From NCBI GenBank assembly GCA_051530055.1, contig CM121343.1, positions 528,389-592,388 on the forward strand: a stretch of DNA of 64,000 bases, read 5' to 3'. The notes under the pieces are model-generated. The model did not search any database. It worked only from the letters and a program-made list of their open reading frames with translations, and was not told the DNA's origin. Every line of letters begins with the position of its first letter. Position 1 is the stretch's first letter. The stretch comes from Neoechinorhynchus agilis. Taxonomy: Eukaryota; Animalia; Acanthocephala. Below are positions 7,483 to 60,559 of this stretch, one piece after another. The translations under genes were made by a program, and so were the position numbers.

Positions 7483-8290
7483 ATGTCGACTCTTGACGAT
7501 AAGCTGCTCGGAATTCCAGCTCAAAACTATTGCAGTGACAGCGATGAGTCCGACGATGGTTATGCCCGATGTGAGCCGGCGTCCGTGGTGCCATTTATGG
7601 CATCGCATCAGAAGCCCGTCGCTACGAACACGGGCCCCAAAGGAGTGATGGAGGATCGGCGGTTATATGATGAAATGTGCCGGAACCAAGCTGAAGAAGA
7701 TCACGCTCAGGTAATATCAGACATGAAGAAATTGAGCCTAAATAATCCGACATCGTACGTCGATAAAAGCGATGAGGATTTCTTCAGACGGTACTGCGCC
7801 ACCCGATTAGAGGAACTGAAACACAAATACGACCGTCTACCAATATTCGGGGTTGTCAACGATCTCAACGCGGATAATTTCATCTTAGCTATAGATAACG
7901 AACACCCGAGCACTACACTACTCGTGCATATCTTCGTCGATGAGAACTCGGCTTGTGAAGCGTTGAACGTTGCGTTTTCCTTTTTGGCAAAGAAGTATTT
8001 GCAAATCAAATTCTGCAGGTTTAAAGCTCAGTCGGGCGTACTCTCAGAAACGTTCAGGCAGAAAGGCTGCCCAGCTATCGTTGGCTATCAAGGTGGCAAA
8101 CTTACGGCTAATCTTGTTTGCTTCGGTCAACATGTCTCTTAAATGCACTTGAAAAGAGAGAAATGTTGAGTTACACCAAATCTTAGGAAATGACTTCTTC
8201 GTAGGTGATTTAGAGAAACTTCTTGTGGACAACAAATTACTACCAAACAAATTCCATGAGAAATCTCGGTGCTATTACTTGTTCGATTAA
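7483..8290 (+). CDS. PDCL: Phosducin-like protein 1, two exons
   Basis: Starts MSTLDDKLLG (PhLP1 signature), NTGPKGV motif, thioredoxin-like domain. The C-terminus LHQILGNDFFVGDLEKLL continues in another frame after an interruption at ~8116-8171; TAA at 8288-8290. Confidence 0.9.
8122..8171 (+). other. Hairpin-forming intron in PDCL, junction ambiguous
   Basis: 49-nt removal gives a length-matched alignment. Stem 8127-8140 with 8156-8169 pairs at 13 of 14 positions (one G-U). GT-AG alternatives 8116-8158 (+2 aa) and 8116-8170 (-2 aa) also exist. Confidence 0.5.
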
Positions 8291-9294
8291 ACAACAAACG
8301 GCCCCAAATATCCTTCTAATATTTTGTCCAGTAAAATTGCATCAAAGGACATCAAACTTCTTTAACACAATGTTGCTCAGTGATCAATATACATAGATCT
8401 TTCCATACTGTCCTTTAAAATTAAATTAATTTTATAAAAACCGGATTCGCAAAAATATTGAATGGCCGTGGATATTTTTTCGGTTAAAGATTAATTTATT
8501 ATTATGAAATATTTCGCGAAATCGCTTAAAAACGTTCTCTCTCTTATATCGAAACAATTTACAATAATAATAACACGTTTATCTGTTAATTGACAAAGAA
8601 AATTATCTTCGAATTTGCATGAGAATTATTTCAGTACTGCTTTAAGATTCGCGCAGAAATTTGAAGAATATTTCTTAAGTTGGTATTAGTTTATTTGATT
8701 TTTGTCGGTTAACTTGTAGTTGTACTTTATCCGCGGAGTGATCATTTTTTAACCCGTGAAAAAAAGCTTTAAGTTGAAATGGAAAGTTTTTAACCCGTGC
8801 GAAAAAACATAATCACATGTAATTCCGTTCAGTTTAATTACGCGTAAAACTCGCGATAGATCAATCCACATATCGTTTCCGGTGGAATTTAAATTTGGAA
8901 GGATGATTTGCAACCTTTAAGAGAAAATTAGCATTATAACTCCCTCTTCTCAGCTCCTGTTGGAGGGGTCTCAGGTTAAAAAAATCCCCCAACAGTTGAC
9001 ATCTGCAATCAATACTCATGGATACGTAGTTTATACAACCAAACGATGGTCTTTCATCCTCAATATCATACACGGCGTGGCAATTAATTCCACCTATTGC
9101 ATCTGTCCTCCTTCTACAACCATTCGGACTTCCACCAGACAAGGGTTTTCCGCCCCTATGGCTCCTTAAATGTCTCGGCAGTAAAACCTATGGAGAACCC
9201 CATTTGAAAATCAAGGAAAAAATCCCAAAATCTGAGTACATAAAGGTCAAAGCGCTGAGATTTCAACATTCGCCCATTGCTTTTATTACGATAT

Positions 9295-11037: not shown

Positions 11038-11105
11038 CAAGACTTTAGACGCTCGCTAAAAATAAACGATGATAACTATGTTTACTCTTCGGTTTGCTGT
11101 TGTTC

Positions 11106-12942
11106 TTACAATCGCTCCTTTTTAAGGGCGACATAAGTATCAACGAATGAAACTACGATCTGTTTAAGCTTGGCTTCCAATTCTTCACTGAGTTGTCCTT
11201 CATTCCTAATGGTATCTAGTACATCCTGATGTTGACTTTGGACGTGTTCAACGAATTCTTTCTCCCAGACAGTGATATCGTTAGGTTGTATCCGGTCGAT
11301 GAGACCTCTGACTCCAGCAAATATGACAACCACTTGCAATTCGATCGCCATTGGTTTATATTGACCTTGTTTGAGAAGTTCGGTAAGGCGTACTCCACGG
11401 CTTAGAAGACTTTGAGTACTGGCATCTAAATCCGAGCCGAATTGAGCAAATGCTGCTACTTCACGGTACTGAGCAAGTTCAAGTTTAAGACGACCCGCTA
11501 CTTGTTTCATCGCTTTTATCTGAGCAGCACTTCCGACTCGACTAACACTGAGACCCACATTTATAGCTGGACGAATTCCTTTACAGCTTATATTCTCTCT
11601 CCCGTTTAAGTTAGATTTCAAAAGGAAAATATAAGACTTTATAGAATAATTCGGTTTCAAGGAAGATTTGTCCATCAGTGATTGAAATGACGTTTGTAGG
11701 GATATAAGCCGATAAATCACCCGCTTGAGTTTCAATGACAGGAAGTGCCGTCAGTGAGCCCCCACCGAAATTATCGTTTAACTTTGCAGCTCTTTCAAGT
11801 AAGCGACTGTGGAGGTAGAACACATCACCCGGATAGGCCTCACGTCCGGGAGGGCGTCTCAACAACAAGGACATTTGTCGATAAGCAACGGCTTGTTTAC
11901 TAAGATCGTCGTAAATAATAAGTGCGTGTTGACCGTTATCGCGGAAATATTCGCCCATCGCACATCCCGTGTAAGGAGCCAAATACTGCAACGGGGCAGC
12001 GTCCGACGCAGTGGCACTGACCACAATTGTGTATTTCATTGCACCGGCGTCAGCTAGGCGCTTCACGAGTTGAGCCACAGTGGATCGCTTCTGGCCGATT
12101 GCAACGTATATACAAAACAATCGACGATCTACACTCTTTTTGCCCGGTTCGGATGATTTAACCGGCGTCATTTGGTCATTGAAACGCTGCTGATTCAGGA
12201 TCGTATCGATAGCAATCGCCGTTTTTCCAGTCTGACGATCGCCAATAATCAACTCACGCTGACCTCTTCCAATCGGAAATAAACCATCGACCACCTTTAA
12301 ACCGGTTTGCATCGGATCCCTCACCGACTGTCTTGGAATTATCCCGGGTGCTTTTACACCGACTCTTGCCCTCTTTTTCGCATTAATGGGACCCTTTCCA
12401 TCAATGGGATCGCCCAATGAGTCCACAACACGACCCAACAACTCCTCGCCTACCGGCACATCCACAATCGAACCCAAGCGTTTTACTACGTCTCCTTGTC
12501 GAATCAGTTTATCGTTTCCGAACACAACGACCCCAACGTTGTCCGCCTCCAAATTCAAAGCCATTCCTTTAACACCACTCCCAAATTCAACCATTTCTTC
12601 GGCTTGGATGTTTCTAAGCCCATAAACACGCGATATACCATCTCCAATTGAAAGGACATGACCAATCTCCGTCATGTCCTGCTTAGTATCGATTCCTAGA
12701 ATTTTCGCTTCCAGTTCAGCAGATACCTCAGGAACGGCTAAAATTCGACTTTTAACCAATTTCGAACGCTAATCAACGAGCTTACTCGTAGCATAGCTCC
12801 TAGCAACAAAGTATGACGGTTGATTTATTCGTACAATCTAAATATACGTGCAGTTTTTCAAGTCAATGCAAAAATATTGATTCACCTTCGGAAACAGGGT
12901 CAATGCTCTTCGAAAATGATTCAATGCCACACCGAAAGCCAT
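11106..12942 (-). CDS. ATP5F1A: Nuclear-encoded mitochondrial F1 ATP synthase alpha subunit
   Basis: GDRQTGKT P-loop, [23 protein letters not shown]; transit-peptide-like N-terminus from ATG 12942; GT-AG introns 12885-12838 and 12785-12738 (48 nt each); a third interruption at 11640-11583. Confidence 0.97.
11583..11640 (-). other. Non-canonical hairpin intron in ATP5F1A (58 nt)
   Basis: Conserved ELFYK-GIRP needs removal of 58 nt, whereas the GT..AG span is 59 nt. Junction TAT|AAAG...CTGT|AAA; 11-bp stem 11635-11625 with 11597-11587. Confidence 0.7.
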
Positions 12943-13499: not shown

Positions 13500-13543
13500 C
13501 CCCGAACCGCTCTAGATTATTATTGTTATTATACGTCACGGGG

Positions 13544-15980
13544 ATGAGCAAGGTTAGTATGATTGTTGCTGTTTTTTCTTTAAATGGCTTTTTAAGAGAG
13601 TTTTAAATGATGAGTCTGCTGATGAGGAGAGTGAAAAAAAGATCCCGCTTTTGGAAGAAAGTGATCCACAAGATCAGGTCTCTACAATCAAGACGGAATT
13701 GATTGTGGTTAAAGGGGAAAGTACTGAAATTGAAAAATCTCCCGGTAAGACAGGCGAAGAAAAAATTTGTGTTCAGAGCGAAGTTAAACCTGAGGAACAA
13801 GAGAAGGTCGAAGTAGAAACTGATCAAAGTAAACCTGAAGATTCAAATCGTGGTAATCCTGAAAATGCATCGTGCGTTGTTCATATCAGTTCTATTCCTC
13901 ATGACGTCCCCGATCAGAAATTGGCGTTTATTGGTCTTGCATTTGGAGAGCTACATTGCATTTTGTACCTTAAAAACAAAGGTCAGGCGTTCATCAGCTT
14001 TCGCGATATCAATGACGCTGCTAAAATGGTGAATTATTTTGCCAAATTCACTCCGGTTTTGTTGGGAAGTCGATTACACGTTCAATTCTCAAATCATAAA
14101 CAGATAAACCTATCCCAAATGAGTCCGTCTGTAGCTCATACCCAACTGGCACTTAAATGTGCACGGGAATTGAAAGCAAAAGCTGCTTCGGGCGAGGTTG
14201 GAAGTGTAGCTCGATTGCTTATTCATGATATGGTAATGGGCGTCTCCGGTAGTATATCCGTGGATACTCTCTATCAGATTTTATCTAAATTCGGACCAGT
14301 TTTGAAAATCGTTATTGGAAAGCGAACGTCATCTAGTCTTCTTGCTTTTGTTCAAATGAGAACTGGATCAGACGTAGGTGTTGCCATAAAGCGTTGGATT
14401 TACTTCGAAGGGGAGTTGGTATGAGTTAATCCTCCGCTATCCAAGAACTCAATGGTCTCTGCTTATTCGGTGGAGGATTTAGCCAGTGTAGCATTGATAG
14501 AGCCAGGACGCCTTGTTTATTTGTGAGAGCCAATTGTGTAAGATGCCGAGACTATACTAATCCTTGTCTTCTAAGTCCGGAAGTTGAAATCGAAGCAGCG
14601 CGTCATCAAAATGGACCAATTCCAACCGTAGATCTAACAGATGATATCGTCGAATACGTTCCTGATGATGAGACTCCGAAAATTACTTCCAATCCTGCCC
14701 AGCAAGCAATCGCTCGTAGAAAAATGACTACATTAACCGGTGCGGATTTGTATGAACCCGTTGAACAGGATGATCCTTCTAATGATAACGCTCAACTGGA
14801 AGAAGAACAAGCAGCCACTGCCGCTATGCTGTATGCTGCTGCCGCCGCTGCTGCTTCAAGACCGCTAATGTCCACGATTCCCCAGTTAGCTTCATCAATG
14901 AATCCATTTGGACTTCGAACGGCATTAGCAGCTGCCGCTGCATTCTTTGATTCGGTAAGATTCTTCTCAATGAACTAATAAACCTCTATTGCCCTATAGC
15001 CGGATACTTCTGGATTTCGATTTGGATATACAGGGCCAGTTCCAGAGGAATTCTTAACAGATAATGGAGCTTTTGTTACAAATCGATCACAGAAACGCGT
15101 TCTTTTAGTCTCCAACCTGAATGAAGCGGTAATACACTTTGATGCTAGAAATTGAACCACGCACATCGGATATTGTTTAGGAAATCAACACAGATAATTT
15201 GTTCATTTTATTCGGTGAGTTGCCTAAAGAAAAGGTCATTTAGAATTTCCGTAGGGGTTTACGGCGATGTCAAAAGAGTCAAGATTCTGTTCAACAAAAA
15301 GGATACCGCTCTTGTACAGTTCAACACTTCTGATCAAGCCGAAACAGGTTAATTTTTCTTCTGCTATAGTCGAATTAATGCACTCGATAATCATGTAATG
15401 TTTAAGCATTAAGGTTGCTAGATGGTATCAGTATTTTTGGTCGCAGGATGAAGATTTCATATTCTAAACATCTTAACATTCAAAGGGTCAAGGATACAGA
15501 CGTAAGTATTTGCTTTTACTTATTTAGAGTCCGCCGATATTTCTCTTAGAATCCAGAACTTACTAAAGATTTTGAAGATTCTTCGTTGCACCGATTTAAA
15601 AAACCGGGATCTAAGAATTACATGAACATTTTCCCACCAAATCCTTCTCTGCACCTTTCCAATCTGTCGTTCGTATCTTTATCTTTTTCTGACTTTGCTT
15701 ACTACATTATTCTTGTCGCGTCTAGTGACGAAGTGACTGAAGAGGAAATCAAGACACTGTTTAGCAAATATGGACGGGTTGAACACTTCCGCTTTTTCGA
15801 AAACAGCAACCAAATGGCACGTATCACGATGGATTCCATCGAGAGTGCATGCCACGCTCTAATGGTCAGACATCAAAATCATTAGTCACACATCGGTGTC
15901 ACGATTTTCCATAGGCTTGCCATAACTACCCAATGTCCAAAAGTCGATATCTCCGCGTTTCGTTTTCGAAGTCGCGATAA
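13544..15980 (+). CDS. PTBP1: Polypyrimidine tract-binding protein (four RRMs), ten exons
   Basis: RDYTNP, VLLVSNLN, GVYGDVKRVKILFNKKDTALVQ, LHRFKKPGSKNYMNIFPP, YLRVSFSKS. Nine GT-AG introns: 13553-13596, 14393-14445, 14955-14999, 15129-15180, 15215-15254, 15348-15406, 15502-15549, 15669-15725, 15865-15914. Confidence 0.93.
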
Positions 15981-16555
15981 ACCGAACCGATTCTGTCCTT
16001 TCTCTCTCCTTTCATCTACACTTGTCGTGGATCTTTATGGCGTGCTTGTTTTGCGAGTTATCGAAATAAAAAACCAATAAATGTCAGTAATTTCCCTATT
16101 TATTTTCAACCTTTCCTCCTTCTCCTCCTCCAAACATACACAATAATATAACGAGTACACTTTAGTTTTCGCGTAAAATGTTTTTGAATATAATCAGCCA
16201 TGAGCTCTTTGGGTAAACTTTCATCCATCATCACCAGTTTTCGATTTCCATAGGGGTTCAAAAGGTCAGTGTTTTTGTTCTTAAACTAATCAATTATTTA
16301 CGCTCACGATTGTTTTTCATCTTGACTCTTTAAATATTTGAACCGCCACTTGGACAATACAAATATTTAACGACACAAAGTCTTGATTATGTGTATTTAG
16401 GGCCAGCGGCAACAATATATCTTTTCTCGGGAGAACGTTTTTGTTAGTGAAATAACATTGAACCTAATCATCTTTTAAATTGTTGAATGGTCCCATCCTT
16501 TTCTGCTGAGAACGTTAGCATGGTCTCGAAATGTAAATCTTAAAACTTATTTAAG

Positions 16556-18020
16556 ATGAATTCGAAACCTGAAAATGCGGAAAGCACGCGAATTTTTGCT
16601 CCAACTGCACAATCTGATACACAGACGTTTTACAAAGAGCAACTGGATGATTTTGAACCTAAAAAACCTTCTTCAAACTCCATCTTGAATACTAGCCTAT
16701 CCGACGACGACGACGACGATGATGATGAACACGATTTTGAACTCGATTCGGAATCCGGAGATGATAATTCTATTAGTAATGGTGCCAAGGATGAAACTGA
16801 CGACGACGATGGTAGTGGTGGTGGTGGATCAAACGACGGCACTTCATTATACGAAAGGGGCAAGCGTGTAAAGCAGCAAATCGCAATGACGAATCTACTC
16901 ATTGATACACGAGTGCTCTTGCATCAGCTGATGATCCAGACTCGAGGAAGTAAATTTCATGATTTGCAAAAGGAACAGAGCACCATCCCAATCGATGATC
17001 TAAACCAAATCATTGATGTAATCAAAAATGTGTCGGATAAAATTGGAATAATGACGACCGTTTTGAGTGCGATCGGGATATATTTCGTCACTAATCGGTC
17101 GTAGTAAATTGCTCCTCCACAAAGGAAATGTCTTTCACTGAAAACTGTGATAGCATACGAAATGCCAGGTAAGCGCATAGTTTTGTCATTAAAAATTCAT
17201 AAAAACAAGCGATTTCTTAATTAGTGCCTTAAATTATTTAGAACCTTGTACATTGATAGAAAATGTTCAATCTTCTTAAAAATGTCTGGACTTTTTGAAA
17301 GCCGATAGTGATTTATGTTCGCAATAAATTGATAGCCATTTATAATTCTTTTGATTTTTAACAGACCGGGAAACGTTCAATTAGTGTCTAAAGACTTAAA
17401 GTTTCTTGGCTGTGTTTGAGTTTTATTTTAATTTTAGTTAATTTGACTTTTGTGCCTTGTGCAGGAAACCGATATTAACTTATTGGCACAAAAAGGGTCA
17501 GATAATGAGGTCGCTAGCAAAACTTGAAAGGCCAATTAATGATCAAATTGACAAAATCCTGAGCGAACGTTTGAAGACGCGTCTCCATGACTCCACAAGT
17601 GTTGACGATCACTCGATTCCTTCTCAATTCGACGATTCCGATTTTGTGGACACAATCGTATCTCGGCATTATGGATCAATATCACAACTTCCTACTTTAA
17701 GCAATTCTTATGTTCAAAATTATCTAAAGCATAAAGGAATACATAAGCCGAAGAGTAATAGAATGAAAACATCAAAGGGAAAAAACGTAATGTAAGCTTA
17801 TAACGTCATTTTTTCTTCTGAACATTTTGTCTTTAGCTACAAAGTGCATCCGAAAATTGCAGGTTTTTGTTTACCCAAGACCCGTCGGTCCATTCGAACA
17901 AACAATCACGAGTTCGATCGGTAAGTTTTTTTTGATTTTTTAAATTTAATTGCGCCTTAAATTTTTTGACTTAGAAAAGCTTTGTTTGAATCTTTGTTCA
18001 ATGTAGTGACGAGTACATAA
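16556..18020 (+). CDS. AATF: AATF/Bfr2 (Traub) family protein, multi-exon
   Basis: Acidic N-terminus, ERGKRVKQQIAMTNLLIDTRVLL, FDDSDF, SKGK..YKVHPKIAGFCLP. Internal exon structure partly inferred; possible upstream micro-exons from ATG 16200. Confidence 0.8.
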
Positions 18021-19023: not shown

Positions 19024-20024
19024 ATGGCTTCTCATGCGTTGATAAGCAAGATAGAATTGTTCAACGATAGAACAAAGAAGGAAATGGGAACATTAAACAA
19101 CGTCCCTCAATCGGAGACGATCGCTCATCTCAAAACTCGCATTCATCATCTGTATCCGCGGCTCTATGAAAGTCGATTGCGACTCAAACAATTCGGTTCT
19201 AAAGAAGTCTTACCTAATTCTACTCTACTGTCGAACTTGATTGGAAGTGGCAATGACCACCGTCTTGCAATCAGTGTTAAGGATTTAGGTCCACAGATAT
19301 CATGGCGAGGAGTATTTATAGCAGAATACGTCGGACCACTCTTGATATACCTAATCGCTTATACGCTTAATAATTTCGTATTAGCCAACGGTCCACGTAA
19401 TCCAATTGTTCACATTGCTGCGATCTGTTGGAGTTTCCACTTTGTTAAACGGATATACGAGTCGTGCTTTGTTCATCGATTTTCTCAAGAAACCATGCCG
19501 TTTGTCAATTTGTTTAAGAATTGTGGATACTACTGGGGATTCGCGATCTGGATCGCCTACCTTATCAATCACGATCACTATAAACAATGATACCTGGTGT
19601 AGTCTTGGTGCTCCTTGACTGCTACACCCAAGTGTCATGTACTGCTCCATCATCTAAGTCAATTCTTGTATGGATCGGAGTCCCAGTGTTCTATTTGGCG
19701 GAAATCGGGAATTTCCAAGTACATTTACTTCTAATGCATTTAAGACCGTCGAAATCAACCGAACGAAAAATACCAATGCCACTTCCTGCATTGCCCTTTA
19801 CTTCCCTTTTCAATTATGTTTCTTGTCCTAATTACACGTACGAAATCCTTGCTTGGCTGGGATTCTTTTTACTGACTCAGTGCTTAGCTGTGCTCGTGTT
19901 TGCATTTGCCGGTGCAATTCAAATGACTATTTGGGCAAAAGGAAAACACAGGAGATACATTCAAGAATTCGGAGCCACCTATACTAAGCTCAGACGAAAT
20001 GCCATTTTACCCTTTATTCTGTGA
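19024..20024 (+). CDS. TECR: Very-long-chain trans-2,3-enoyl-CoA reductase, two exons
   Basis: Ubiquitin-like N-terminus, KDLGPQISWRGVFIAEYVGP, HRFSQETMP, NCGYYWGF, VSCPNYTYEI, KHRRY; interrupted at 19582-19640. Confidence 0.95.
19582..19640 (+). other. Non-canonical hairpin intron in TECR (59 nt)
   Basis: INHDHY|TAPS aligns with INHPLY-TPP only after removing 59 nt. No GT lies between the conserved exon end and the TGA at 19588. About 16 bp of stem; junction TAT|AAAC...CATGT|ACT. Confidence 0.85.
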
Positions 20025-27624: not shown

Positions 27625-27790
27625 ATTTAATAGGCAAAAATGGAAGGTTAGAAATTAAATTTAGGCTGGGCGAGGAATATGATATAGCGACGGTTATTTA
27701 TAGTAAAATGTTCGGAACGGTTTATAAAGGGCGAAGTAAGTTTACAAACAAAGACGTTTCAAACAAAGTCGAGGAGAGCCGACTTGACCA
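27625..27790 (+). pseudogene. Protein kinase N-lobe fragment, casein kinase 1-like
   Basis: MFGTVYKGRSKFTNKDVSNKVE resembles the G-loop/VAIK region; no downstream kinase motifs. Confidence 0.35.
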
Positions 27791-39766: not shown

Positions 39767-40289
39767 GTTGCGTTTTGAACTCAAAACAAATATACTTAAT
39801 GGGACAAGAGTGCACCGTCTTTCGTTGACTACACGTCACGTAGTGAAAATGCTATTACGTCACATAACATACACGGAAGACACTTACACGCGTCAAGGAA
39901 ACAACAACCAAGTAATATGCTAACTGTTCCTTTTCGTTGTTACGCAAAATGTTCACGAGGTGTTTTGTATACGTTCAGATGTTTATACGTAAAACTGTTG
40001 CGGTTGCGCTTTTTCGATATTTTCCGGTGTGAGGTCGCGAAAAGCCGCAGTGCAAATGAGTTTTTGCCAAGAATGAAAAAACATGTCGGAGGTGAAACTC
40101 CGGATCGTTCAACTGTGTTCCGGAGAAAAACAAACAATGAAGAATTCGACGTCACTGAGGCCTAATCCATTGTGAGTCAGTAAGACATTGAACTGATTAC
40201 TTGACGATGATCCTCTTCAATCAATGCCTTCACGCGAATCGCATATTGCTCTCCAGTTAAAGTTCGTGGATGTCCTTCACGTTTGCTAA

Positions 40290-42530: not shown

Positions 42531-42539
42531 AACGAAATA

Positions 42540-43180
42540 AAAAGATTTTCTTAGAGTTCTGGTAGAATTTTTCGCTGAATAGAACATCAATTTAGAGCTT
42601 TTGCAGTAAGGCAATATGCGGATAAAACAAAAGACGAATTTAATTGAAAATCTTTACTTGGGATGATATTCGATTTATTGATTTTGCCCAGATCGTTTTC
42701 CATTTTTGTTCTTATGGAATTGTTGCATAAACCATTGAAAAATCGCGTTTGGAAATGAACATACAACTATTTTAAAGTTTCGTGTTGAGAGCATGTAATT
42801 TTCGAAAAATCAGGTGTTAAAAACTTTGGAACGTACTTGTCTGAGGTCCATGAGAAAATAAAATTTAATAGAAAGCCGATAACAATTCAACAATAAGAGC
42901 CAATGAAGGAGGTGCTGAAATTTCGTCAGGTAAATTGGGTTTAATTCTAAGTATTTATAGATTTAAATAATCGATCATAGTCTCCGAATGCTTTTGATGG
43001 ATACTTACGGTTACATAACTATATTAAGAACCAATGAAGCTTTTCCATTCACGATTTTCTTAAAGACCAAAATGTTGACCCATTGAAAATTGGATCTCAT
43101 CGTGTTGCTCTAAGGAGATCCCGATTGATTTTATCAGATTTTAATCCACTACTCTAAGATTATGTTTGAAAAATTCACGA
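42540..43180 (+). repeat. Dispersed repeat X, RTE-filled copy
   Basis: Direct homolog of 48925-49575; its continuation taccgagcatgg resumes at ~46388. Confidence 0.85.
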
Positions 43181-46100: not shown

Positions 46101-46387
46101 AAGCACTGTACAAGAGAGCCGGAGTTCAACCGCCCGGTGAATATTTGCGCCGCAGACGACAGCAGTTCACGGGCAATATAATTCGGTCCGAGGCATCTTG
46201 CCAACAGGTCGTGCAACAGTTAATTTTCTGGAAGCCAATGACATTGTATCGCGAAGGCAAAGGGAACTGTCGTACATACGATGACCTGATTTTAAGAGAC
46301 GCGAATTGCCCGCATAACAGGACTGCAGTCGTGTATTTTAGATCCTTGCGGAGTCTAATTCTATTTGACGGGCTTATACCTAACAAT
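43180..46387 (+). mobile_element. Decayed RTE-clade LINE
   Basis: APE motifs GSLNCRS, LQELR, GVGV, AGDSNA; RT motifs EQNGFRKGRRTTEHI, FVDFRRAFDSV, GVLQGDTLAPFLF; stops and frameshifts. Confidence 0.9.
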
Positions 46388-46439
46388 ACCGAGCATGGGT
46401 CATCAAGGGAGAACGATTGCGAAAACGAGCAAAATAAAT

Positions 46440-47513
46440 GTAGCAAAACTGCAATTCCTGTTCGGTCGAAAACTAAAGAAGTGGAGGATAAGTCGAAACT
46501 AAAAAAAACACCGAATTGGATTTAAAAATTATATTCGAAAGCCTTACAGTGACGAGATCAAGTTTAGATATCGACACAATGAAGACGAAAACGCCAAAGA
46601 TTAAAGAAATGAATATTATGAAACTCATTATAAAGAAGAGGTTTGCACCGGCTGCAAAAATAAGCTACAATCAACAAGGAAATACGGTTTTTGAGGTCGT
46701 CTGCGAAGATTTACTTTTATCTCTCTACCTCGCAAAATCGGTTGATTGAATGATAACTGACATATTTTCTGATCGATTTGCCTGCTAGTCCATTAAAACG
46801 AAATCCTCAAATGTGATCGGCAAATTCAAAGGTGATAAATCGGTCTGAGTTTGGCGGCGTTAAGGATGAGGTCCCATGAGTCTTTAAAAACGTAAATTGA
46901 AAAATTCAAAACATAAAGTTTGGCGGAATGGACAAACCTTTAATTTGTCCAAGATCACTTTTCGTAATACATTGAACATCTCGATATTTGATTTACTCGC
47001 ATAAGCAAGGCGACAGATCAGCGAGATCACAAAAATTAACTAAAATTAAATGTTTATATCAAAATCCACTTCTTGAGCATTCTTCCGTTTTCGTCCCTCT
47101 GACGAAACAAAAATTGATTCTTTTGATTCATTCAATGACCATCCAAAGAATGTTTTTGATGAATCTCACAACACGATCATTTTGCGTTAAAAATATATGA
47201 AAAGGTCCACTCCTTCCAGGCTAGATAAACAAAGCTAACAGTTAACGAAAAGGCAATGCTGAGTAATATATTTCTTTAAAATATTGTGTATTTCTAGGGA
47301 TCGTATAAGTATAACGGCCATTTGTACATTGTGATCAAATTAATGCCAACCGGAGATTTGTATGAACATTTGCGTGCAAAACGACGATTTAGGGAAGAAT
47401 AAAATAGATTTATCATAGCTCAAATTGTCGTCGTTTTTGATTATTTACATCGGATTAAGGTTGCTCGCAGAGAAATAAAGCCTAAGAATATTTTGGTCCA
47501 AGACAACGGCAAA
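46440..47513 (+). pseudogene. Partial copy of the kinase-pseudogene module
   Basis: Homologous to 33741-34912; truncated where PLE copy 2 begins. Confidence 0.8.
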
Positions 47514-48570
47514 GAATGGACTCTTGACGAATAAATCTTGATGTTGTTGAGTGTGTTAGTGTTGCCTGATTATAAAAAACCAATAGAGAGCTATGGATGA
47601 TACACCCACATCTACAGTGAACAACTTCCTTACATCTGCTACAGAAATCCTTGTCAAGCGTTTTGTACAAGGCAAAGTTAGAAGCTTCACTTTATCGCAA
47701 GGAGAAATTATCATGGGGATCATCACACTGGACAAGTCACCAACCGATGAGGTATAAAATCTTGGCTGTCACTTCATACTTCCGATGAGCTTCTCTTATT
47801 TCATCTACTCAATTTGCATGGAGTAGGGAAAGGGAGATGATAGTACAGGAGCTGAAAATTAGGGGATATCCCAAATGGATTATAGACCGAGGAATCAGAG
47901 GCAGTAACTACCATCCGCATAACAAAAAAATCGTCTGCAAAGCCTGTACGCTTCGAAAGGGTGCACTTCATTGATGACGACACAGATCAAATGATCTATT
48001 CCATTAGGAGAAAGAAGGTTGGAATTTGTCTATACAAAACTAAAGGAAACGCTTTCAGAAGCACATTCAAGAAGGGTAAAACTGAGCCGACCAATGGGAT
48101 TTATAGAATGTACTGTGAAAAGTGTGAGAAAGCTTATATCAGACAAACGATGCAAGGCATTGAGAAGAGGGTCGCTCAACATAAGCAAGCCCGCAGTCGA
48201 TTTGAACATTCGTCAGCAACCTCCAATCATCAAGAGACATGTAAGCATCGAGCGGATTTTGGTGGCACCAACATTATAGAAATAGAGCAAAACTTAAAAA
48301 AGGCGGCTTATTTTGGAGGCCTTGCACATCGCTGTGTCCAACGCAATGGAAGGAAATAAAGCTAATTTTAGCTTCAAACTTCCAGCCAGCGACGTGTTAA
48401 AAATCAATGCTAAAATCATGAAAAAAACGTGTTCGAACGGATAATTGGCCCCGAAATTTGAGTTTGGCGATCCAGCGCAATCGAGCGTAAAACCTGAACG
48501 GGAAAAATATATTTTTAGATGACTGATGAGGCGAGGTTACCTCCTTCGAAATATCGCCAATTAATCAAAC
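47514..48570 (+). mobile_element. Penelope-like GIY-YIG fragment, copy 2
   Basis: Near-identical to 32030-33070 with an extra A frameshift near 48300. Confidence 0.85.
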
Positions 48571-52851: not shown

Positions 52852-53074
52852 CCTGAAAACGCTTGTGTACATATTGTAAAACCCAGCTCACCGTTATCTC
52901 GGAAAAAATCTAATACGAATGTATATTTTTAAAAGAATTGTTAAAAATTACATCATCCAATGAGATAATAAAATTACAAATATTTTGGTTTTAATAAACC
53001 AATCACATTAAAAGTTATTCTCAATGGCGAATTGTAACACACTCGAGCTTTATAAGAAAATCTTTTTATTTCGT

Positions 53075-56000
53075 TATTGTAAACAATGCCTAAGAAGCTA
53101 CTGATTGCCCCGCATTTAAGCATAATGAAAACAACTGTTGCGTATAATGTTCTAAATGCGAAATATATATACGTAGAATGTAACATTCGGAAAAAAACGC
53201 AGGGCTATTTAAACGTGAATGGATGTAAATAAACAAACAATTACCGCTTGGTTAAAATTATCCAAAAGCGTGCCTTTCACATGTATAAAATAATAACAAA
53301 ATTGATTATTTGATGTCATAATGAGGAAAGGACAACCACAAGAACACAACATAGATGCAAATCCCTAAGAAGTTACAGATTGCAACGCATTGAAGCACAA
53401 TGAAAATAACTGTTGCGTAAAATGTTCTAAAATCGAAAGATATATACGTAGAATGCCGCCTCGATAAAAACAACAATGCATGGGTATATTTACGCTTGCT
53501 CAATTAGATAAACAAACAACTAACTCTTATATAAAATTATCCAAAAGCGCGCACCGATACATTTATAAAATAATAACAAATTTTATGATTTGATGTCATT
53601 ATGAGAAAAGGACAACAATTCGTCAAAACATATATACAAATACATAAGAAGTCAAAGAGAGCGCCGCATATAAGCATAATCAAAGCAACTGTGGTGTACA
53701 ATATTCTAACTGCGAAAGATATATACGTAGGATGCCGCATTCAATAAAAACAACAACGCATGGATATTTTTATGCGTATAGATTTAAATAAACAATTAGC
53801 GCTAAGATAAAATGATGAAAGAGCGTGCCCTTTACATTGATAAAAACAAAGGTGATGATTTGATGCCATTATGAATAAAAGCACGAGCATTCGTAACCAA
53901 CATATATACAAATACCTAAGAAATTGGATATTGCCGCGCAGAAAGGCAAAAATAAAAACAACTGGCGTGCATAATGCTATTAGTGCGGCAGATATATACG
54001 TAGTATACCGCATTGCATAAAAACAACAACGCATGGATATATTTACGCTTGTGCAATTAAATAAATAAACAATTTATGCTTAGATAAAATGATCAAAAAG
54101 CGTGCCCCTTTACATCTACAGAAACATTAAAAAAAATTTATGATTTGATATCATGAGAAAAGTACAACCATAAGTACACAACATTTTTGCAAATGCCTAA
54201 AAATTTAAAGATTATCCCACATTTAAGCATAATGAAAACAACTGCTGCATATAATGTTCTAAATGCGAAATATATATACGCAGAATGCAACATTCGGAAA
54301 AAACGCATGGTGAATGGATGTAAATAAACAATTACCGCTTAGAAAAAAGGATAAAAAAGCGTGCCTTTCACATTTATAAAATAATAACAAATTTGACCAT
54401 TTGTTGTCATTATGGGAAAAGGACAACAATTCGTAAAAAACATATATACAAATACATAAGAAGTCAAAGATAGCGCCGCATATAAGAATAATCAAAACAA
54501 CGGGTGTGTATAATGTTCCAAATGCGAAAGATATATACGTAGCATACCGCATTGCATAAAAACAACAACGCATGGATATATTTGCGCTTGTGCAATTAAG
54601 TAAATAAACAATTTATGCTTAGATAAAATGATCAAAAAGCGTGCCCCTTTACATCTACAGAAACAATAACAAATTTTATGATTTGATGTCATTATGAGAA
54701 AAGGACAACCATAAGTATGCAACTTACATGCAAGTGCCTAAGAAGTCAAAGATAGGGCCGCATATAAGCATAATTAAAACAACTGTTGCGTATAATGTTA
54801 TAAATGCGAAAGATATATACGTAGAATACATCCTCGATAAAAACAACAACACATGGGTATATTTACGTTTGTGCAATTAGATAAACAAACAACTAGCGCT
54901 TAAATAAAATTATCCAAAAGCGCGCCGCGATACATTTACAAAATAATAACAAATTTTATGATTTGATGTCATTATGGGAAAAGGACAACAATTCGTAAAA
55001 AACATATATACAAATACATAAGAAGTCAAAGATAGCGCCGCATATAAGCATAATCAAAACAACTGGTGTGTATAATGTTCCAAATGCGAAAGATATATAC
55101 GTAGCATGTCGCATTCCATAAAAAAACAACGCATGGATATTTTTGCGTGTGCATGTAAATAAATAAACAATTACCGCTTAGATAAAATGATCAAAAAGCG
55201 TGCCTTTACATCTATAGAAAAATAACAAAATTGATGATTTGATGTCATTATGAGAAAAGGACAACCATAAGTATGCAACTTACATGCAAGTGCCTAAGAA
55301 GTCAAAGATAGCGCCGCATATAAGCATAATGAAAACAACTGTTGCGTATAATGTTCTAAATGGAAAGATATATACGTAGAATGCCGCCTCGATAAAAACA
55401 ACAACGCATGGGTATATTTACGCTTGTGCAATTAGATAAACAAACAACTAACTCTTATATAAAATTATCCAAAAGCGCGCACCGATACATTTATAAAATA
55501 ATAACAAATTTTATGATTTGATGTCATTATGAGAAAAGGACAACAATTCGTCAAAACATATATACAAATACATAAGAAGTCAAAGAGAGCGCCGCATATA
55601 AGCATAATCAAAGCAACTGTGGTGTATAATGTTCTAATGCGAAAGATATATACGTAGGATGCCGCATTCAATAAAAACAACAACGCATGGATATTTTTAT
55701 GCGTATAGATTTAAATAAACAATTAGCGCTAAGATAAAATGATGAAAGAGCGTGCCCTTTACATTGATAAAAACAAAGGTGATGATTTGATGCCATTATG
55801 AATAAAAGCACGAGCATTCGTAACCAACATATATACAAATACCTAAGAAATTGGATATTGCCGCGCAGAAAGGCAAAAATAAAAACAACTGGCGTGCATA
55901 ATGCTATTAGTGCGGCAGATATATACGTAGTATACCGCATTGCATAAAAACAACAACGCATGGATATATTTACGCTTGTGCAATTAAATAAATAAACAAT

Positions 56001-57240
56001 TTATGCTTAGATAAAATGATCAAAAAGCGTGCCCCTTTACATCTACAGAAACATTAAAAAAAATTTATGATTTGATATCATGAGAAAAGTACAACCATAA
56101 GTACACAACATTTTTGCAAATGCCTAAAAATTTAAAGATTATCCCACATTTAAGCATAATGAAAACAACTGCTGCATATAATGTTCTAAATGCGAAAGAT
56201 ATATACGCAGAATGCAACATTCGGAAAAAACGCATGGTGAATGGATGTAAATAAACAAACAATTACCGCTTAGAAAAAAGGATAAAAAAGCGTGCCTTTC
56301 ACATTTATAAAATAATAACAAATTTGACCATTTGTTGTCATTATGGGAAAAGGACAACAATTCGTAAAAAACATATATACAAATACATAAGAAGTCAAAG
56401 ATAGCGCCGCATATAAGAATAATCAAAACAACGGGTGTGTATAATGTTCCAAATGCGAAAGATATATACGTAGCATACCGCATTGCATAAAAACAACAAC
56501 GCATGGATATATTTGCGCTTGTGCAATTAAGTAAATAAACAATTTATGCTTAGATAAAATGATCAAAAAGCGTGCCCCTTTACATCTACAGAAACAATAA
56601 CAAATTTTATGATTTGATGTCATTATGAGAAAAGGACAACCATAAGTATGCAACTTACATGCAAGTGCCTAAGAAGTCAAAGATAGCGCCGCATATAAGC
56701 ATAATTAAAACAACTGTTGCGTATAATGTTATAAATGCGAAAGATATATACGTAGAATACATCCTCGATAAAAACAACAACACATGGGTATATTTACGTT
56801 TGTGCAATTAGATAAACAAACAACTAGCGCTTAAATAAAATTATCCAAAAGCGCGCCGCGATACATTTACAAAATAATAACAAATTTTATGATTTGATGT
56901 CATTATGGGAAAAGGACAACAATTCGTAAAAAACCTATATATACAAATACATAAGTAGTCACAGATAGCGCCGCATATTAGCACAATTAAAACAACTTGT
57001 GTGTATAATGTTCCTATTGCGAAAGACACGTACCATGTCGCATTCGACTGAAAAAACAACGCATGGATATTTTTTATGTGTATGCATGTAAATAAATAAA
57101 CAATTACCGCTTAGAGCAAATGGTCAAAGAGCGTGCCAGTTTACATTTATACAATAATAACAGAATTGATGATTTGATGTCAATATGAAAAAAGTACAAC
57201 ACAGAGAAAACTGTAGCATAGCTACGATGAAACAAATTTG
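53075..57240 (-). repeat. Satellite family C, ~15 units with a ~1.93-kb higher-order repeat
   Basis: Identical spurious ORFs recur at offsets of about 1927-1931 bp (53741/55668, 54492/56423). Confidence 0.9.
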
Positions 57241-57766
57241 ACATTAGCAAACGTGAAGGACATCCACGAACTTTAACTGGAGAGCAATATGCGATTCGCG
57301 TGAAGGCATTGATTGAAGAGGATCATCGTCAAGTAATCAGTTCAATGTCTTACTGACTCACAATGGATTAGGCCTCAGTGACGTCGAATTCTTCATTGTT
57401 TGTTTTTCTCCGGAACACAGTTGAACGATCCGCAGTTTCACCTCCGACATGTTTTTTCATTCTTGGCAAAAACTCATTTGCACTGCGGCTTTTCGCGACC
57501 TCACACCGGAAAATATCGAAAAAGCGCAACCGCAACAGTTTTACGTATAAACATCTGAACGTATACAAAACACCTCGTGAACATTTTGCGTAACAACGAA
57601 AAGGAACAGTTAGCATATTACTTGGTTGTTGTTTCCTTGACGCGTGTAAGTGTCTTCCGTGTATGTTATGTGACGTAATAGCATTTTCACTACGTGACGT
57701 GTAGTCAACGAAAGACGGTGCACTCTTGTCCCATTAAGTATATTTGTTTTGAGTTCAAAACGCAAC

Positions 57767-60559
57767 ATGAATACCGAGCTAAGAAATGCTTTGATTGAGC
57801 ACTTAGAGGTTGTCGCCTTTCATGTGCAGGAAATGCTGGTCATCGTTCAAGGCAAAAGTAATGCGGACCAGGCATCAGGTGTAACATCGCAAACTTCGGA
57901 CCAAGTGCAAACGCCGAAAAAGGAGGACTCCGTTGATTGTGACGATGCTGAAATGCTACTGTATCTCAAGTACTTTCAAATCTTCGGGGATTGGCTGTCG
58001 GAAGGCGCGGTGCATCCAAAAAGGTCAGGAACGCATCCCCGTAAAGATGAGATTCCAACAAAAGTCCCGAGGATAAATTGTAGTCCGAGTAGCCGATCGT
58101 ACACAAATAGTAAAGAAAACTCTTTCGGCCAGGATTATCACCGGGAAAAAAAATCGATGGATAATTGCGATTCCTCCTATTCAAATGACAGCGTAAGATT
58201 GATAAAAAAGCGAAGAGGGAAAATAATAATCGAATCTTCAAGTGATGATGACAGTGCTGTTCCACGTAGAATTGAAGCGATAATCGAAGATGACAACTGC
58301 GATGAGCAAACGCGATTGGCCATGTCAAAAGAGAGAAGTCGATTGAAGCGTTTGGAATCGAAGGGAGCTGAAATTGATCATAAAAGCATCATACTCGACT
58401 ACGACTCGGAAACAAAGAAACCGCTTTTATCGGTACATCCTTCTATTGCCAAGTGCCTCAAAAAGCATCAAATCGAAGGATGCCACTTTCTGTATGATAA
58501 TTGCATTGAAACGATTGAAAACAATTATGATGGAAGGCAGTTGGGTGGAGGATGTGTCCTTGCACATTGCATGGGACTCGGTAAAACTTTTACGGTTATC
58601 GCGTTTCTTCAAGCAGTACTTACTCATTTCAAGTTAACCCAAACCAAATCCGCTTTGATTCTCTCACCAAAAAGTGGACTGACCCAATGGTCCAGGGAGT
58701 TCCAGAGATGGCAGTCAAGAATCCGATTAGAAGAAAGAGTTGATGTGATTGTACTTGACGATAAAATGTACGGTTCTGATAAGCTCAAAAACATTCAAGA
58801 TTTTCGAATATCTATTGAACCCACAGTTCTCATAATGACATACTGCCGATTTCGGAATATAATTGAGCGGTTAAATAATTCTCGGGATGATAATCAAATT
58901 CGTCAAGCACTCTTAAATCCTGGTCCGGATTTGTTGGTTTGCGATGAAGGCCATATTTTAAAGAATGAACGTACGAACATCTATAAAGTACTCTCGAACA
59001 TCCGAACTCCAAGGCGTATTGTGATGACCGGGACTCCGCTGCAAAATAATTTAGCAGAGTATCATTGCATGGTACATTTCATAAAACCGAACTATTTAGG
59101 TACGAGGAGGGAATTTAACAACCGATTTATTACACCAATCAAAAACGGCTTAAACGCTGATTCTACGTGGTATGATGTTAAGCTCATGATGAAGAGAACT
59201 CATATTCTTCACGAAATGCTTGGCGGTTGCGTCCACAGACGAGACAGCGCTTGCCTCCAACCTTATCTCCCAAATCGATATGAATATGTTATCAGTATTC
59301 GTCCTTCAAAGATGCAAGCAGAATTATATCGATTATTGGTTCTTAATAAAGGACAAACACAATCACATAGAGATCTTTTGAACTTCTATACCATTGCCAA
59401 ACGGATTTGCGCCCATCCGTTCCTTTTGTGGTCTGATTATAAGAAGAAGCAGGATGCTGTGAGAAGGAAATGGGATAAATTACGCAAATCCGGAGGAGAT
59501 AATCTTGCAAGTCACGACGGAGATAATGAAGAATAGCCGTTTACCGATCGCGTTTCTCTATATCGGCAAACCTCTATAATATGTGCAAATACTGAATGGT
59601 TTCATGGACTTTGCACAGATCCTGAATCTATAAGGTATCGGCTGGACGTCTCTGGTAAACTTGTTGTACTTTTAATGATCCTCGAGCATTGTGCTCAACT
59701 CAATGACAAAGTTTTAGTCTTCTCTTCTAGTTTAACAGTGCTCGATTTCATTGAAGCTATTCTGTTGAACATTAGCCTGCAATCATCTAAACAATCGGAT
59801 AGAGAACAGCATTGTCTCCGTTGGGTATTTGGCTTGGATTACACCCGAATTGACGGAAGTACTTGCGGAATCGATAGAAAAGCCCGCGTTGCGCATTTCA
59901 ATAAAACGAGGAACCGACGTATGCGATTGTTTTTAATTTCTACTCAGGCTGGGGGAATTGCGCTGAATCTTCAGGCGGCTAATCGCGTTGTAATATTTGA
60001 ACCTTCCTGGAATCCTTCGAATGACATCCAGTCGATTTATCGAGTCTACCGATTTGGTCAATCTAAAGAAGTGTTCATTTACAGGCTCTTTACCCTCGGG
60101 ACAATCGAAGAAAAGATTTATCAGCGTCAAATCACAAAGCAAGGTCTAGTTTTGCGGGTTTGTGACGAACAGCACGTTGACCGACATTTTACTGGCCTTG
60201 AACTTTCTAAGCTTTTCACGTTCGATGAAGTTCCCGATGACAACGAAGGCGATACTCAACCCACTCCAATTTTGCCTAAGGATGTCGTTCTGGCTGAACT
60301 TTTGCGATGCTCGCAAAAGTGGATATATGGGTATCACGAACACGACTCTTTCCTTGAACAAAGACCGGAGGAGAAGCTTACGGAAGATGAGAGGAAGGCT
60401 GCATGGGAAGAATATGAGAATGAGAAGTTGCAATTTAGTGCCCGAATTTCTAATGGCCAATACTCTTTACCGACTCTTCCACCAACGACATTTGTTGCAT
60501 TTGCGGAAAGTCGAAAGTCCATGACATTAGGTGCCAATGAGATGATTCAAATCGATTAG
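57767..60559 (+). CDS. ATRX: ATRX/XNP SNF2-family chromatin remodeller, copy 2
   Basis: As copy 1; one visible amino-acid difference (EIPTK versus EIPRK); in-frame TAG at 59534-59536. Confidence 0.93.
59525..59584 (+). other. Putative non-canonical hairpin intron in ATRX copy 2 (60 nt)
   Basis: Contains the in-frame TAG; stem ATAG-cc-GTTT-a-CCGAT with ATCGG-c-AAAC-ct-CTAT; junction GAT|AATG...ATGT|GCA. Confidence 0.6.

Follow-up and report, generated by a model that had tools for sequence, protein, structure and literature searches.

The window analysed here, a 64,000-nt stretch of chromosome CM121343.1 (positions 528,389-592,388; assembly GCA_051530055.1) from the acanthocephalan fish parasite Neoechinorhynchus agilis, raises the question of how conserved genes can carry short inserts that bring a stop codon into the reading frame and whose ends are not those of ordinary introns. 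Such inserts are found in the genes for TECR, ATP synthase alpha (ATP5A) and an ATRX-like protein (Table 1), and re-reading the sequence gave the same coordinates, lengths and in-frame stops as a preliminary description of this DNA.

Table 1. Positions of inserts, host genes and comparison loci in the 64,000-nt window.
Feature	Position	Strand	Description
TECR gene	19024-20024	+	exons 19024-19581, 19641-20024; no further introns
TECR insert	19582-19640	+	59 nt, AA...GT (or TA...TG), imperfect 18-bp hairpin
ATP5A gene	11106-12942	-	exons 12942-12886, 12837-12786, 12737-11641, 11582-11106
ATP5A canonical introns	12885-12838, 12785-12738	-	GT-AG
ATP5A insert	11583-11640	-	58 nt, 19-bp hairpin, flanking TAAAG direct repeat
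ATRX-like gene, copy A	57767-60559	+	annotated as 57767-59536 (589 aa) and 59675-60559 (294 aa), split at insert
ATRX-like gene, mirror copy	36974-39766	-	
ATRX-like insert, copy A	59525-59584	+	60 nt, in frame, TAG at codon 4 (NEE*), weak 13-bp hairpin
ATRX-like insert, copy B	37949-38008	-	identical to copy A, inside perfect inverted duplication
Inverted duplication	35951-41895 and 55638-61582		arms of 5945 nt, 100% identity, carrying both ATRX copies
PTBP-like gene (control set)	14393-15914	+	eight GT-AG introns, 40-60 nt, no significant folding
Phosducin-like (PDCL) interruption	8126-8186	+	13-bp hairpin at 8127-8169

Inserts in TECR, ATP5A and ATRX

In the case of TECR, the upstream frame meets a TGA at position +7 of the insert (reading KQ*), and the public annotation ends at this stop, leaving a 188-aa model. 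Removing the 59 nt restores a single open reading frame that is gapless across the junction (NHDHY|TAPS) against seven homologues; T187 is invariant, and every invariant residue 3' of the insert is preserved. No frame-restoring GT/GC-AG solution exists within 36 nt: no GT precedes the in-frame TGA, and the 3' end lacks an AG. The gene for ATP synthase alpha, an essential enzyme subunit, likewise reads into a stop (...EI*) and, minus 58 nt, forms one open reading frame that is gapless against homologues including the relative P0125. The flanking 5-nt repeat allows six possible junction registers. The sole GT/GC-AG solution, a 43-nt intron ending GGGAGAGAG without a pyrimidine tract, adds five residues (NISCK) inside ELFYKGIRP. 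Judging from these frames and alignments, precise removal is required for the conserved TECR and ATP5A proteins. Both genes appear to be single-copy, the protein collection listing one TECR and one ATP5A protein of N. agilis and no second of either; the intact paralogues that, as noted earlier, would mark these loci as insertion-inactivated pseudogenes were thus not found in that collection.

The ATRX-like gene is a less sharply defined case. Because the arms of the inverted duplication are 100% identical, its two sites in the window count as one, and the four sites in three genes of the preliminary description, although all real, reduce to three independent cases in about 85 kb of N. agilis sequence. 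Deleting the 60 nt leaves one open reading frame, but homology does not fix the boundaries: in-frame removals of 60, 84, 108 and 144 nt all fit the shared terminus pattern, and the 60-nt boundaries were picked by analogy with TECR and ATP5A. A third copy, a 97% paralogue on another chromosome, has kept the insert with identical termini; it carries two substitutions within the insert, uninformative on stem covariation, and no further paralogues in which covariation could be sought were found beyond the three known copies. The paralogues of the two chromosomes, which retain the insert and have intact reading frames on both sides of it, differ by 28 non-synonymous and 21 synonymous substitutions (dN/dS 0.36, binomial p 6e-4), a ratio that shows purifying selection on the ATRX copies carrying the insert.

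Termini, folding and position

All three inserts show the junction AT|AA...TGT|R at lengths of 58-60 nt, as had been described. At that spacing, 25 occurrences of this terminus pattern were counted in 128 kb (both strands), or 6.5e-5 per site and length, and the chance of ATP5A matching the TECR termini is about 4e-4. The direct repeat reported as T or TA is a single T in TECR and in ATRX, where it does give the alternative register A|TAA...TG|T; no TA repeat is present, however, and ATP5A has the longer TAAAG, so that no consistent target-site duplication can be recognized (1, 5 and 1 nt in TECR, ATP5A and ATRX, respectively). Neither end resembles a 5' or 3' splice-site consensus, and a pyrimidine tract is absent from each insert (0/3). 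A branch-site-like CUUGAC lies 22 nt from the 3' end in TECR and an AUCUAAC in the hairpin loop, 29 nt from the 3' end, in ATP5A, while ATRX has no clear motif.

Each insert had been said to fold into a stem. This holds for TECR (18 bp; dG -20.5, z -3.5/-3.7 against shuffles) and ATP5A (19 bp; dG -14.8, z -3.0/-3.1), whose values of -3.7 and -3.1 also stand apart from the -1.1 to +1.35 of 12 neighbouring GT-AG introns, but not for ATRX, where the 13-bp stem with internal loops does no better than shuffled sequence (z -0.6/-0.7). The hairpins are thus specific to the non-canonical class and significant in two of its three members. The surrounding introns are ordinary, as the earlier reading had it: 13 were mapped, all GT-AG, and the inserts make up 3 of the approximately 16 introns mapped. 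In length the inserts fall inside the local canonical range of 40-65 nt.

The inserts also differ from their neighbours in position. Both canonical ATP5A introns are ancestral, occupying positions in common with Takifugu and Antedon, whereas the inserts lie at lineage-specific ones: the conserved ATP5A intron of Takifugu and Antedon is nine codons upstream of the N. agilis insert, TECR is a single exon in P. laevis and has introns elsewhere in Adineta and Saccoglossus (the nearest 10 nt away), and the ATRX gene of Seison has no intron at the insert position. That the inserts have no internal sequence in common was confirmed, and no other copies were found by blastn-short against the window and loci L002 and L003 (~85 kb). 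With neither a second copy nor a consistent target-site duplication, a transposon origin is unproven.

Other candidate loci

Scanning the whole window for T|AA...TGT|R with a single strong hairpin returned six loci against a shuffle mean of 3.6 (p 0.125), which is not an enrichment; additional matches such as 17360-17413 inside an AATF intron were not taken as members of the class. Rfam gave no match in the window at gathering thresholds. Intron 1 of the PTBP-like gene (~14386-14445), at first look an AT|AA hairpin member, has a same-length in-frame GT-AG solution at 14393-14445 and no significant folding, and is canonical. The PDCL interruption, at whose internal stop the annotation is truncated, can be removed in three ways: as a 61-nt GT-AG intron at the cost of four residues, as 49 nt (8131-8179) with a gapless fit to human PhLP, or as a 43-nt AA...GT insert (8129-8171) adding two residues. 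In GPI8/PIGK, at locus L002, removal of 294 nt with GT...CA (equivalently TG...AG) ends is gapless against human PIGK, but GT(3697)...AG(3966), with a strong pyrimidine tract and eight added residues, makes this a canonical or ambiguous intron. The flanking loci L004 and L006 held no more conserved genes.

Comparison with known introns and elements

The inserts match neither spliceosomal class in sequence. Their ends are AA...GT or TA...TG in place of the U2-type GT/GC...AG; their 5' ends (AAACAA, AAAGTC, AATGAA) are unlike the U12-type RTATCCTT, and for the branch site TCCTTRAY TECR alone offers TCCTTGAC, 21 nt upstream. Reading them as AT-AC introns would destroy conserved residues. Mirtrons are GT-AG hairpin introns and ordinary substrates of the spliceosome; they share with the inserts a length of ~55-65 nt and pairing that reaches almost to the splice sites, and differ in their ends, and the window has no Rfam match.

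The closest animal counterpart is the larvacean Fritillaria borealis, whose non-canonical, MITE-derived introns were described by Henriet et al. 2019, as related in PMC13326754 and PMC11282704. According to these papers, comparable introns there are removed by the ordinary U2-type spliceosome (PMC13326754), and canonical introns are old whereas non-canonical ones are new in position (PMC11282704), which is also the pattern seen in N. agilis. The two systems further agree in having short non-GT-AG introns with terminal inverted repeats in animal nuclear genes, two purines opening the intron after a YAY-like exon triplet (TAT, TAT and GAT in N. agilis), and a compact genome with heavy intron loss. 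They differ in that the F. borealis termini are AG...AC or AG...AT and the last intron triplet is YAY (PMC13326754), as against AA...GT and TGT in all three N. agilis inserts; in that non-canonical introns make up 95% there and a minority here; in the target-site duplications and multi-copy MITE families of F. borealis, neither of which was seen in ~85 kb of N. agilis; and in phylum, N. agilis belonging to the unrelated Syndermata.

Nonconventional introns of euglenids likewise stand alongside conventional ones and have Y|R junctions, a purine-first 3' exon and no pyrimidine tract (PMC12501133, PMC11282704); inverted repeats pair their ends, as in TECR and ATP5A and weakly in ATRX, and their junctions, too, can slide along short direct repeats. 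However, the signature 5'-N3-CDG...CHG-N5-6|R-3' is absent: N. agilis has CAA, GTC and GAA at +4 to +6 and no CTG 5-6 nt from the insert 3' ends (PMC12501133). Euglenid introns, moreover, run from tens to thousands of nt in protist hosts, against 58-60 nt in an animal. Introner or MITE introns of dinoflagellates (Amoebophrya, Polarella) are also new introns derived from inverted-repeat insertions, some with non-canonical ends (PMC7789003, PMC11282704), but they have many copies, clear target-site duplications and a family consensus, whereas each N. agilis insert is unique in the ~85 kb. The AA-GT termini fall outside the principal classes reported for either Fritillaria or euglenids. Our literature search found no report of hairpin non-GT-AG introns for Acanthocephala, and the microRNA and BUSCO supplements of PMC12256650 contained nothing usable on hairpins or spliceosome losses.

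Origin and removal of the inserts

Taken together, the results give indirect support to the view that the inserts are a genuine class of intron-like interruptions, with common non-GT-AG termini, a narrow length range and, in two of three, an end-to-end hairpin, and that the genes carrying them have to be functional. The interpretation that we favour, at a probability of roughly 0.55, is that the inserts are lineage-specific non-canonical introns which arose from palindromic insertions and are excised from the pre-mRNA, most likely by the major spliceosome. It can be envisioned that a small palindromic element with terminal inverted repeats inserted into an exon and became a new intron in this lineage only; the hairpin would then bring the two ends together, removal from the pre-mRNA would be precise at AT|AA...TGT|R, and the most likely remover would be a major spliceosome tolerant of AA...GT ends, as in F. 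borealis. Both the removal at the RNA level and the spliceosome as its agent are what we infer. The small sample, three cases in ~85 kb, and the non-significant ATRX hairpin count against this interpretation, as do the ATRX boundaries chosen by analogy, ends unlike any splice-site consensus, the missing pyrimidine tract and the lack of enrichment in the window-wide scan.

A more speculative proposal, which we regard as doubtful, is a putative second route in animals, independent of the spliceosome and suggested in the preliminary description to read structure and length, by which short inserts defined by a hairpin would be cut out of nuclear mRNAs or of somatic DNA. Its RNA-level form, either hairpin-guided excision and ligation as proposed for euglenids or an endonuclease with an RtcB-type ligase, seems rather unlikely. 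We know of no comparable mRNA-intron pathway in animals, the ATRX insert has no convincing hairpin, and neither bulge-helix-bulge structures nor IRE1-type CNG|NNGN loops were seen when the junctions were read by eye. The narrow length of 58-60 nt and the restriction of hairpins to the non-canonical class do speak for it, as does the euglenid-like architecture, with Y|R at both junctions, a purine-first 3' exon and paired ends (PMC11282704, PMC12501133), in inserts that have no pyrimidine tract and yet occur alongside ordinary GT-AG introns, but the euglenid N3-CAG...CTG-N5-6|R is missing (PMC12501133). If true, such a route would mean that palindromic insertions can persist in essential genes, and animals would have an equivalent of the unexplained nonconventional splicing of euglenids.

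That the inserts are never removed and simply disrupt their genes, as pseudogenes or as alleles in pooled worms, is improbable: ATP synthase alpha, which is essential, and TECR appear single-copy, the invariant TECR residues downstream are all present, three inserts with common termini and length lie in one 64-kb window, and the ATRX copies have been under purifying selection after gaining theirs. Speaking for it are the look of small palindromic insertions at new positions, the pooled worms from which the assembly was made (PMC12690905) and the duplication of the ATRX region.

Ordinary splicing at cryptic canonical sites, such as the 43-nt GT-AG intron annotated in ATP5A, or small assembly or homopolymer errors would be a highly improbable cause. 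Of two successive ATP5A registers, one opens with GT and the other closes with AG, so that an assembly lacking a single G in AAAGGA would be hiding a canonical intron of 59 nt; the similarly off-by-one GPI8 has its good canonical alternative, and PTBP intron 1 proved to be GT-AG. In TECR, however, the sites that this would need are absent, the ATRX termini are identical in the 97% paralogue on another chromosome, and the hybrid assembly, based on Illumina reads, has a k-mer completeness of 96% (PMC12690905).

Excision of somatic DNA in the manner of ciliate IESs, with the assembly representing the germline form, is a very slim prospect. It would need precision, for which the short flanking repeats (T, or TAAAG) could serve, and the palindrome could guide a nuclease. 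The IES-like excision at TA repeats suggested earlier nevertheless fits poorly, as no TA...TA or TTAA boundary repeat is found and the repeat in TECR and ATRX, two of the three cases, is a single T; somatic DNA should also dominate in whole worms, yet the inserts are in the assembly (PMC12690905), and we found no literature report of DNA elimination in Acanthocephala. The ribosomal bypass likewise suggested, by a gene-60 or mitochondrial byp hop, or readthrough of the ATRX TAG, is scarcely credible: the hairpins, the in-frame ATRX insert with its one TAG and the AAA codons at both edges of ATP5A are suggestive, but take-off and landing codons match in ATP5A alone, where no stop follows the take-off codon, and to our knowledge animal cytosolic ribosomes have no such bypass.

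Implications for splicing and annotation

If transcripts confirm AT|AA...TGT|R removal, Acanthocephala would join one larvacean clade as a second animal lineage, independent of it, that tolerates non-GT-AG introns, and the adjoining of canonical and hairpin introns in the same genes would offer a natural experiment on splice-site choice and on the birth of introns from insertions. The search of the protein collection returned no transcript-derived N. agilis proteins across the insert junctions.

BRAKER and AUGUSTUS by default model canonical splice sites exclusively, and with that default broken models of TECR, ATRX, PDCL and ATP5A are to be expected. Of the seven conserved host genes examined in the window, four or more are indeed affected, TECR, ATRX and PDCL being truncated or split and ATP5A distorted by a forced GT-AG site, in BRAKER2 models that had been guided by RNA-seq reads (PMC12690905). 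Because of these broken models, and because the metazoan BUSCO set stands at 47% in the genome against 55% in the transcriptome (PMC12690905), some of the gene loss reported in N. agilis may be an artefact of how these introns were annotated. Public RNA-seq data for N. agilis are deposited under PRJNA1223661.

Predicted removal of the inserts from TECR and ATP synthase alpha

The four insert sites of the preliminary description, in TECR, in ATP synthase alpha (ATP5A) and in two copies of an ATRX-like helicase gene, were all found as described when the sequence was read at each of them. Deleting the TECR insert fuses two ORFs into a 313-aa protein that aligns across the junction without a gap with seven homologues (NHDHY^TAPS against NHPxYTxPS, the caret marking the junction), the Thr immediately 3' of the junction being invariant in that alignment. 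Deleting the ATP5A insert joins the two halves of the protein at a junction preceded by ELFY and followed by a ten-residue stretch, and this segment runs on without interruption in fish and in P0125, the ATP5A of the nearest relative found (85% identity).

As a test of canonical sites, we listed all introns with GT/GC-AG or AT-AC ends that would give an open reading frame again and lie no more than 36 nt from an insert. When all options within that distance were enumerated for TECR, no frame-restoring GT-AG or GC-AG intron was found; there is no GT from the last conserved upstream residues to the in-frame TGA, and the AT-AC options were rejected, since they would replace the invariant Thr. The sole GT-AG option for ATP5A is 43 nt long, has the 3' end GGGAGAGAG and inserts NISCK into ELFYKGIRP, and it is exactly the one used by the public N. 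agilis model (P0124). Cryptic canonical splicing, like assembly error, fits worse than precise removal of the inserts. Elsewhere in ATP synthase alpha there is a lineage-specific in-frame extension of ~11 residues (within a 20-residue segment, against NESQDEKKR in the nearest relative), which contains a CCGGTT...AACCGG palindrome and could be the remnant of an in-frame insertion.

Inserts, candidate junctions and other features (window positions unless stated; carets mark junctions)
Feature	Position	Length	Ends or predicted junction
TECR insert	19582-19640	59 nt	ends atcactat^AAACAATG...GTCATGT^actg; junction TTATCAATCACGATCACTAT^ACTGCTCCATCATCTAAGTC
ATP5A insert	11583-11640 (minus)	58 nt	ends tattctat^AAAGTCTT...AAGCTGT^aaag; junction TTGAAACCGAATTATTCTAT^AAAGGAATTCGTCCAGCTAT
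ATP5A, annotated alternative			junction AAACCGAATTATTCTATAAA^AATATAAGCTGTAAAGGAAT
ATRX-like insert	59525-59584	60 nt	ends acggagat^AATGAAGA...AATATGT^gcaa; junction TTGCAAGTCACGACGGAGAT^GCAAATACTGAATGGTTTCA
Phosducin-like (PDCL) interruption	8126-8186 (+)		
PDCL candidate junction, first of three			ATCTTGTTTGCTTCGGTCAA^ATCTTAGGAAATGACTTCTT
PDCL candidate junction, second of three			GGCTAATCTTGTTTGCTTCG^GAAATGACTTCTTCGTAGGT
PDCL candidate junction, third of three			TAATCTTGTTTGCTTCGGTC^TACACCAAATCTTAGGAAAT
PTBP-like introns (eight)	14393-15914		
Second AATF intron	17170-17465	~296 nt	
Hairpin inside second AATF intron	17360-17413	54 nt	T^AA...CTGT^G
ATP synthase alpha extension	about 12110-12170 (minus)	~11 residues	
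Perfect inverted duplication, whole ATRX-like gene	35951-41895 and 55638-61582	at least 5.9 kb	
Further inverted-duplication arms	41275-42553/53053-54331 and 40592-41291/54311-55010		
Tandem repeats and satellites	60931-62900, 35951-36616; 40400-42550, 53000-57200		
Decayed retroelements	4777-6700, 27100-31950, 32390-32944, 43100-46550, 47886-48356		
Fused PTBP-AATF public model	13558-17104	837 aa	
CHCH-type gene / GPI8/PIGK (L002 positions)	3167-3412 / 3399 onward		

Copies of the ATRX-like gene

In the ATRX-like helicase, deletion of the insert removes an in-frame TAG. A conserved xW[WFY]xxL motif closely follows the insert, and the linker that contains the insert varies in length, which places the exact boundaries of the insert beyond the reach of homology; four in-frame removals end at 59584 (60, 84, 108 and 144 nt), with identical termini in each. 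A 108-nt GT-AG option was rejected, as the conserved EWF motif would be lost. Both window copies lie inside a 5945-nt inverted repeat that is 100% complementary and are therefore counted as one case. A third copy, at locus L002 on chromosome CM121342.1, is 94% identical to the duplication over 4.6 kb and retains the insert with two substitutions. Of the changes between the window and L002 copies over 2727 sites, 21 are synonymous and 28 non-synonymous (dN/dS 0.36, and 0.25 downstream of the insert; binomial p 6e-4 for the synonymous excess). Both ORFs are intact and the insert is present in window and L002 copies alike, so whichever copy is under selection bears it; the presence of the insert is therefore compatible with function, and it has to be removed or skipped.

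A very recent palindrome or gene conversion would account for the inverted duplication, the alternative being a fold-back artefact of assembly. Its spacer of ~13.7 kb is full of retroelement fragments. The window also contains tandem repeats of 222 nt, and satellites of ~280 nt with long open frames in their units; these satellites are found again flanking the L002 copy.

Termini, size and folding compared with ordinary introns

All three inserts have the termini AT^AA...TGT^R, an eight-position pattern with 25 occurrences in the 128 kb of both strands when the spacing is 58-60 nt. The chance of ATP5A sharing the TECR termini is ~4e-4, allowing six possible ATP5A registers. No other sequence common to the three inserts, nor any other match to them, was found in the ~85 kb of N. 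agilis genome compared, and the class is built on only three independent cases.

Guided by protein homology, we mapped 13 GT-AG introns (eight in the PTBP-like gene, two at the 5' end of ATP5A, one in a PPP1R11-like and two in an AATF-like gene). All except the second AATF intron measure 40-65 nt, a range that includes the inserts, and their 3' ends are usually T-rich (...TTTAG-like). The TECR insert folds end to end into a hairpin of dG -20.5 kcal/mol (z -3.7 against shuffled sequences, 0/300 as stable) and that of ATP5A into one of dG -14.8 (z -3.1, 1/300), the arms being imperfect terminal inverted repeats that extend to the termini. Since the 12 short canonical introns lack low z values (-1.1 to +1.35), the hairpin is a trait of the non-canonical class and not of introns generally here; not every member has one, the folding of the ATRX insert being unremarkable (z -0.7). 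A clean hairpin (dG -15.6) bounded by termini like those of the inserts lies inside the long, canonical AATF intron; we do not claim it as a member because such matches were not above chance in a window-wide scan.

The interruption of the phosducin-like gene forms a significant 13-bp hairpin (z -2.2). Removal of 49 nt with non-GT-AG ends gives a product gapless against human PhLP, whereas the GT-AG option loses 4 residues, and this interruption may be a fourth member of the class with different termini.

Age of the insert positions

In Pomphorhynchus laevis, TECR is encoded by one exon and lacks the insert. Several TECR intron positions are common to Adineta vaga and Saccoglossus, none of them at the N. 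agilis insert, and the closest, found in Saccoglossus, is offset by 10 nt and has a different phase. In ATP5A, ten positions are common to Takifugu and Antedon, the nearest (GQ^IF) being nine codons upstream of the insert; both canonical N. agilis introns lie exactly at such shared positions (PK^V, phase 0, and phase 1 in the codon preceding (T/V)(A/P)EVS). No intron lies close to the corresponding site of Seison ATRX. This comparison therefore argues that the old positions are those of GT-AG introns and that the hairpin inserts are new insertions. Decayed retroelements in the window include an endonuclease/RT LINE-like element, a CCHC gag-like ORF and GIY-YIG endonuclease ORFs, the last of which are typical of Penelope-like elements; because many are frameshifted, ORF-joining scans for further inserts are unreliable. 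The division seen here into old canonical and new non-canonical introns is the one described for Fritillaria borealis (PMC11282704).

Possible mechanism of removal

On these data the inserts need to be removed precisely. We favor a tolerant major spliceosome that would splice them out of pre-mRNA, because the only animal precedent does so (PMC13326754), because insert size matches that of local introns, because motifs resembling branch sites occur (in ATP5A AUCUAAC, which the hairpin loop exposes, and in TECR CUUGAC, at 22 nt from the 3' end), and because the hairpin would bring both ends side by side. RNA-level removal without the spliceosome has to be taken seriously as a rival: in general build the inserts match the nonconventional introns of euglenids (Y^R junctions, a 3' exon that begins with a purine, paired ends, no pyrimidine tract), and they coexist with conventional introns, as in euglenids, but the defining euglenid N3-CAG...CTG-N5-6 signature is absent from them (PMC12501133). 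Excision from DNA fits worse than splicing by a tolerant spliceosome, and full-text literature searches returned no description of programmed DNA elimination in Acanthocephala. Pseudogenes or insertion alleles also fit worse; a single N. agilis protein was found for TECR and a single one for ATP5A, ATP synthase alpha is indispensable, and TECR keeps all alignment-invariant residues downstream of its insert. Ribosomal bypass likewise fits worse, and the inserts fail the defining tests of U2 GT-AG, U12, Fritillaria AG-AC/AT and euglenid introns, IES, bypass and mirtrons.

In behavior the inserts come closest to the Fritillaria introns, the first animal case, and to those of euglenids, although their termini are AA-GT and those of Fritillaria AG-AC/AT. 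No publication connecting non-canonical introns with Acanthocephala turned up in full-text literature searches. Insertion-derived non-canonical introns are already known, and what we would rate as new is the phylum and the AA-GT termini.

Public annotation and genome

The public TECR model is cut short to 188 aa by the stop codon of the insert, ATRX is divided into 589-aa and 294-aa genes in 3/3 copies, and the phosducin-like gene is also truncated, the RNA-seq-guided annotation having taken neither removal option. By default BRAKER/AUGUSTUS is not known to model any but canonical splice sites, so these failures are the outcome expected from real non-canonical introns. N. agilis, an acanthocephalan (thorny-headed worm) of mullets, has a 46.2-Mb genome with a BRAKER2 annotation from RNA-seq, and the genome paper makes no mention of introns (PMC12690905). 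Two ORFs of the window match NCBI proteins encoded on a 7.8-Mb contig, CM121343.1 of assembly GCA_051530055.1, and a cluster mate of 97% identity is recorded as a hypothetical protein of N. agilis; locus coordinates put the window at about 528,389-592,388 of that chromosome. BUSCO scores are higher for the transcriptome than for the genome (metazoa, 54.9% vs 47.1%; eukaryota, 71.0% vs 58.4%), with fragmented genes commoner in the genome (PMC12690905), a difference in the sense to be expected were non-canonical introns to disrupt gene finding from genomic sequence.

The PTBP-like gene (four RRMs, eight small introns) and the start of the adjoining AATF/TRAUB-like gene are fused in one public model. 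At L002, GPI8/PIGK and a CHCH-type (twin Cx9C-like) gene upstream of it on the same strand share 14 nt, the start codon of the former falling on the final codons of the latter, an operon-like packing in a 46-Mb genome.
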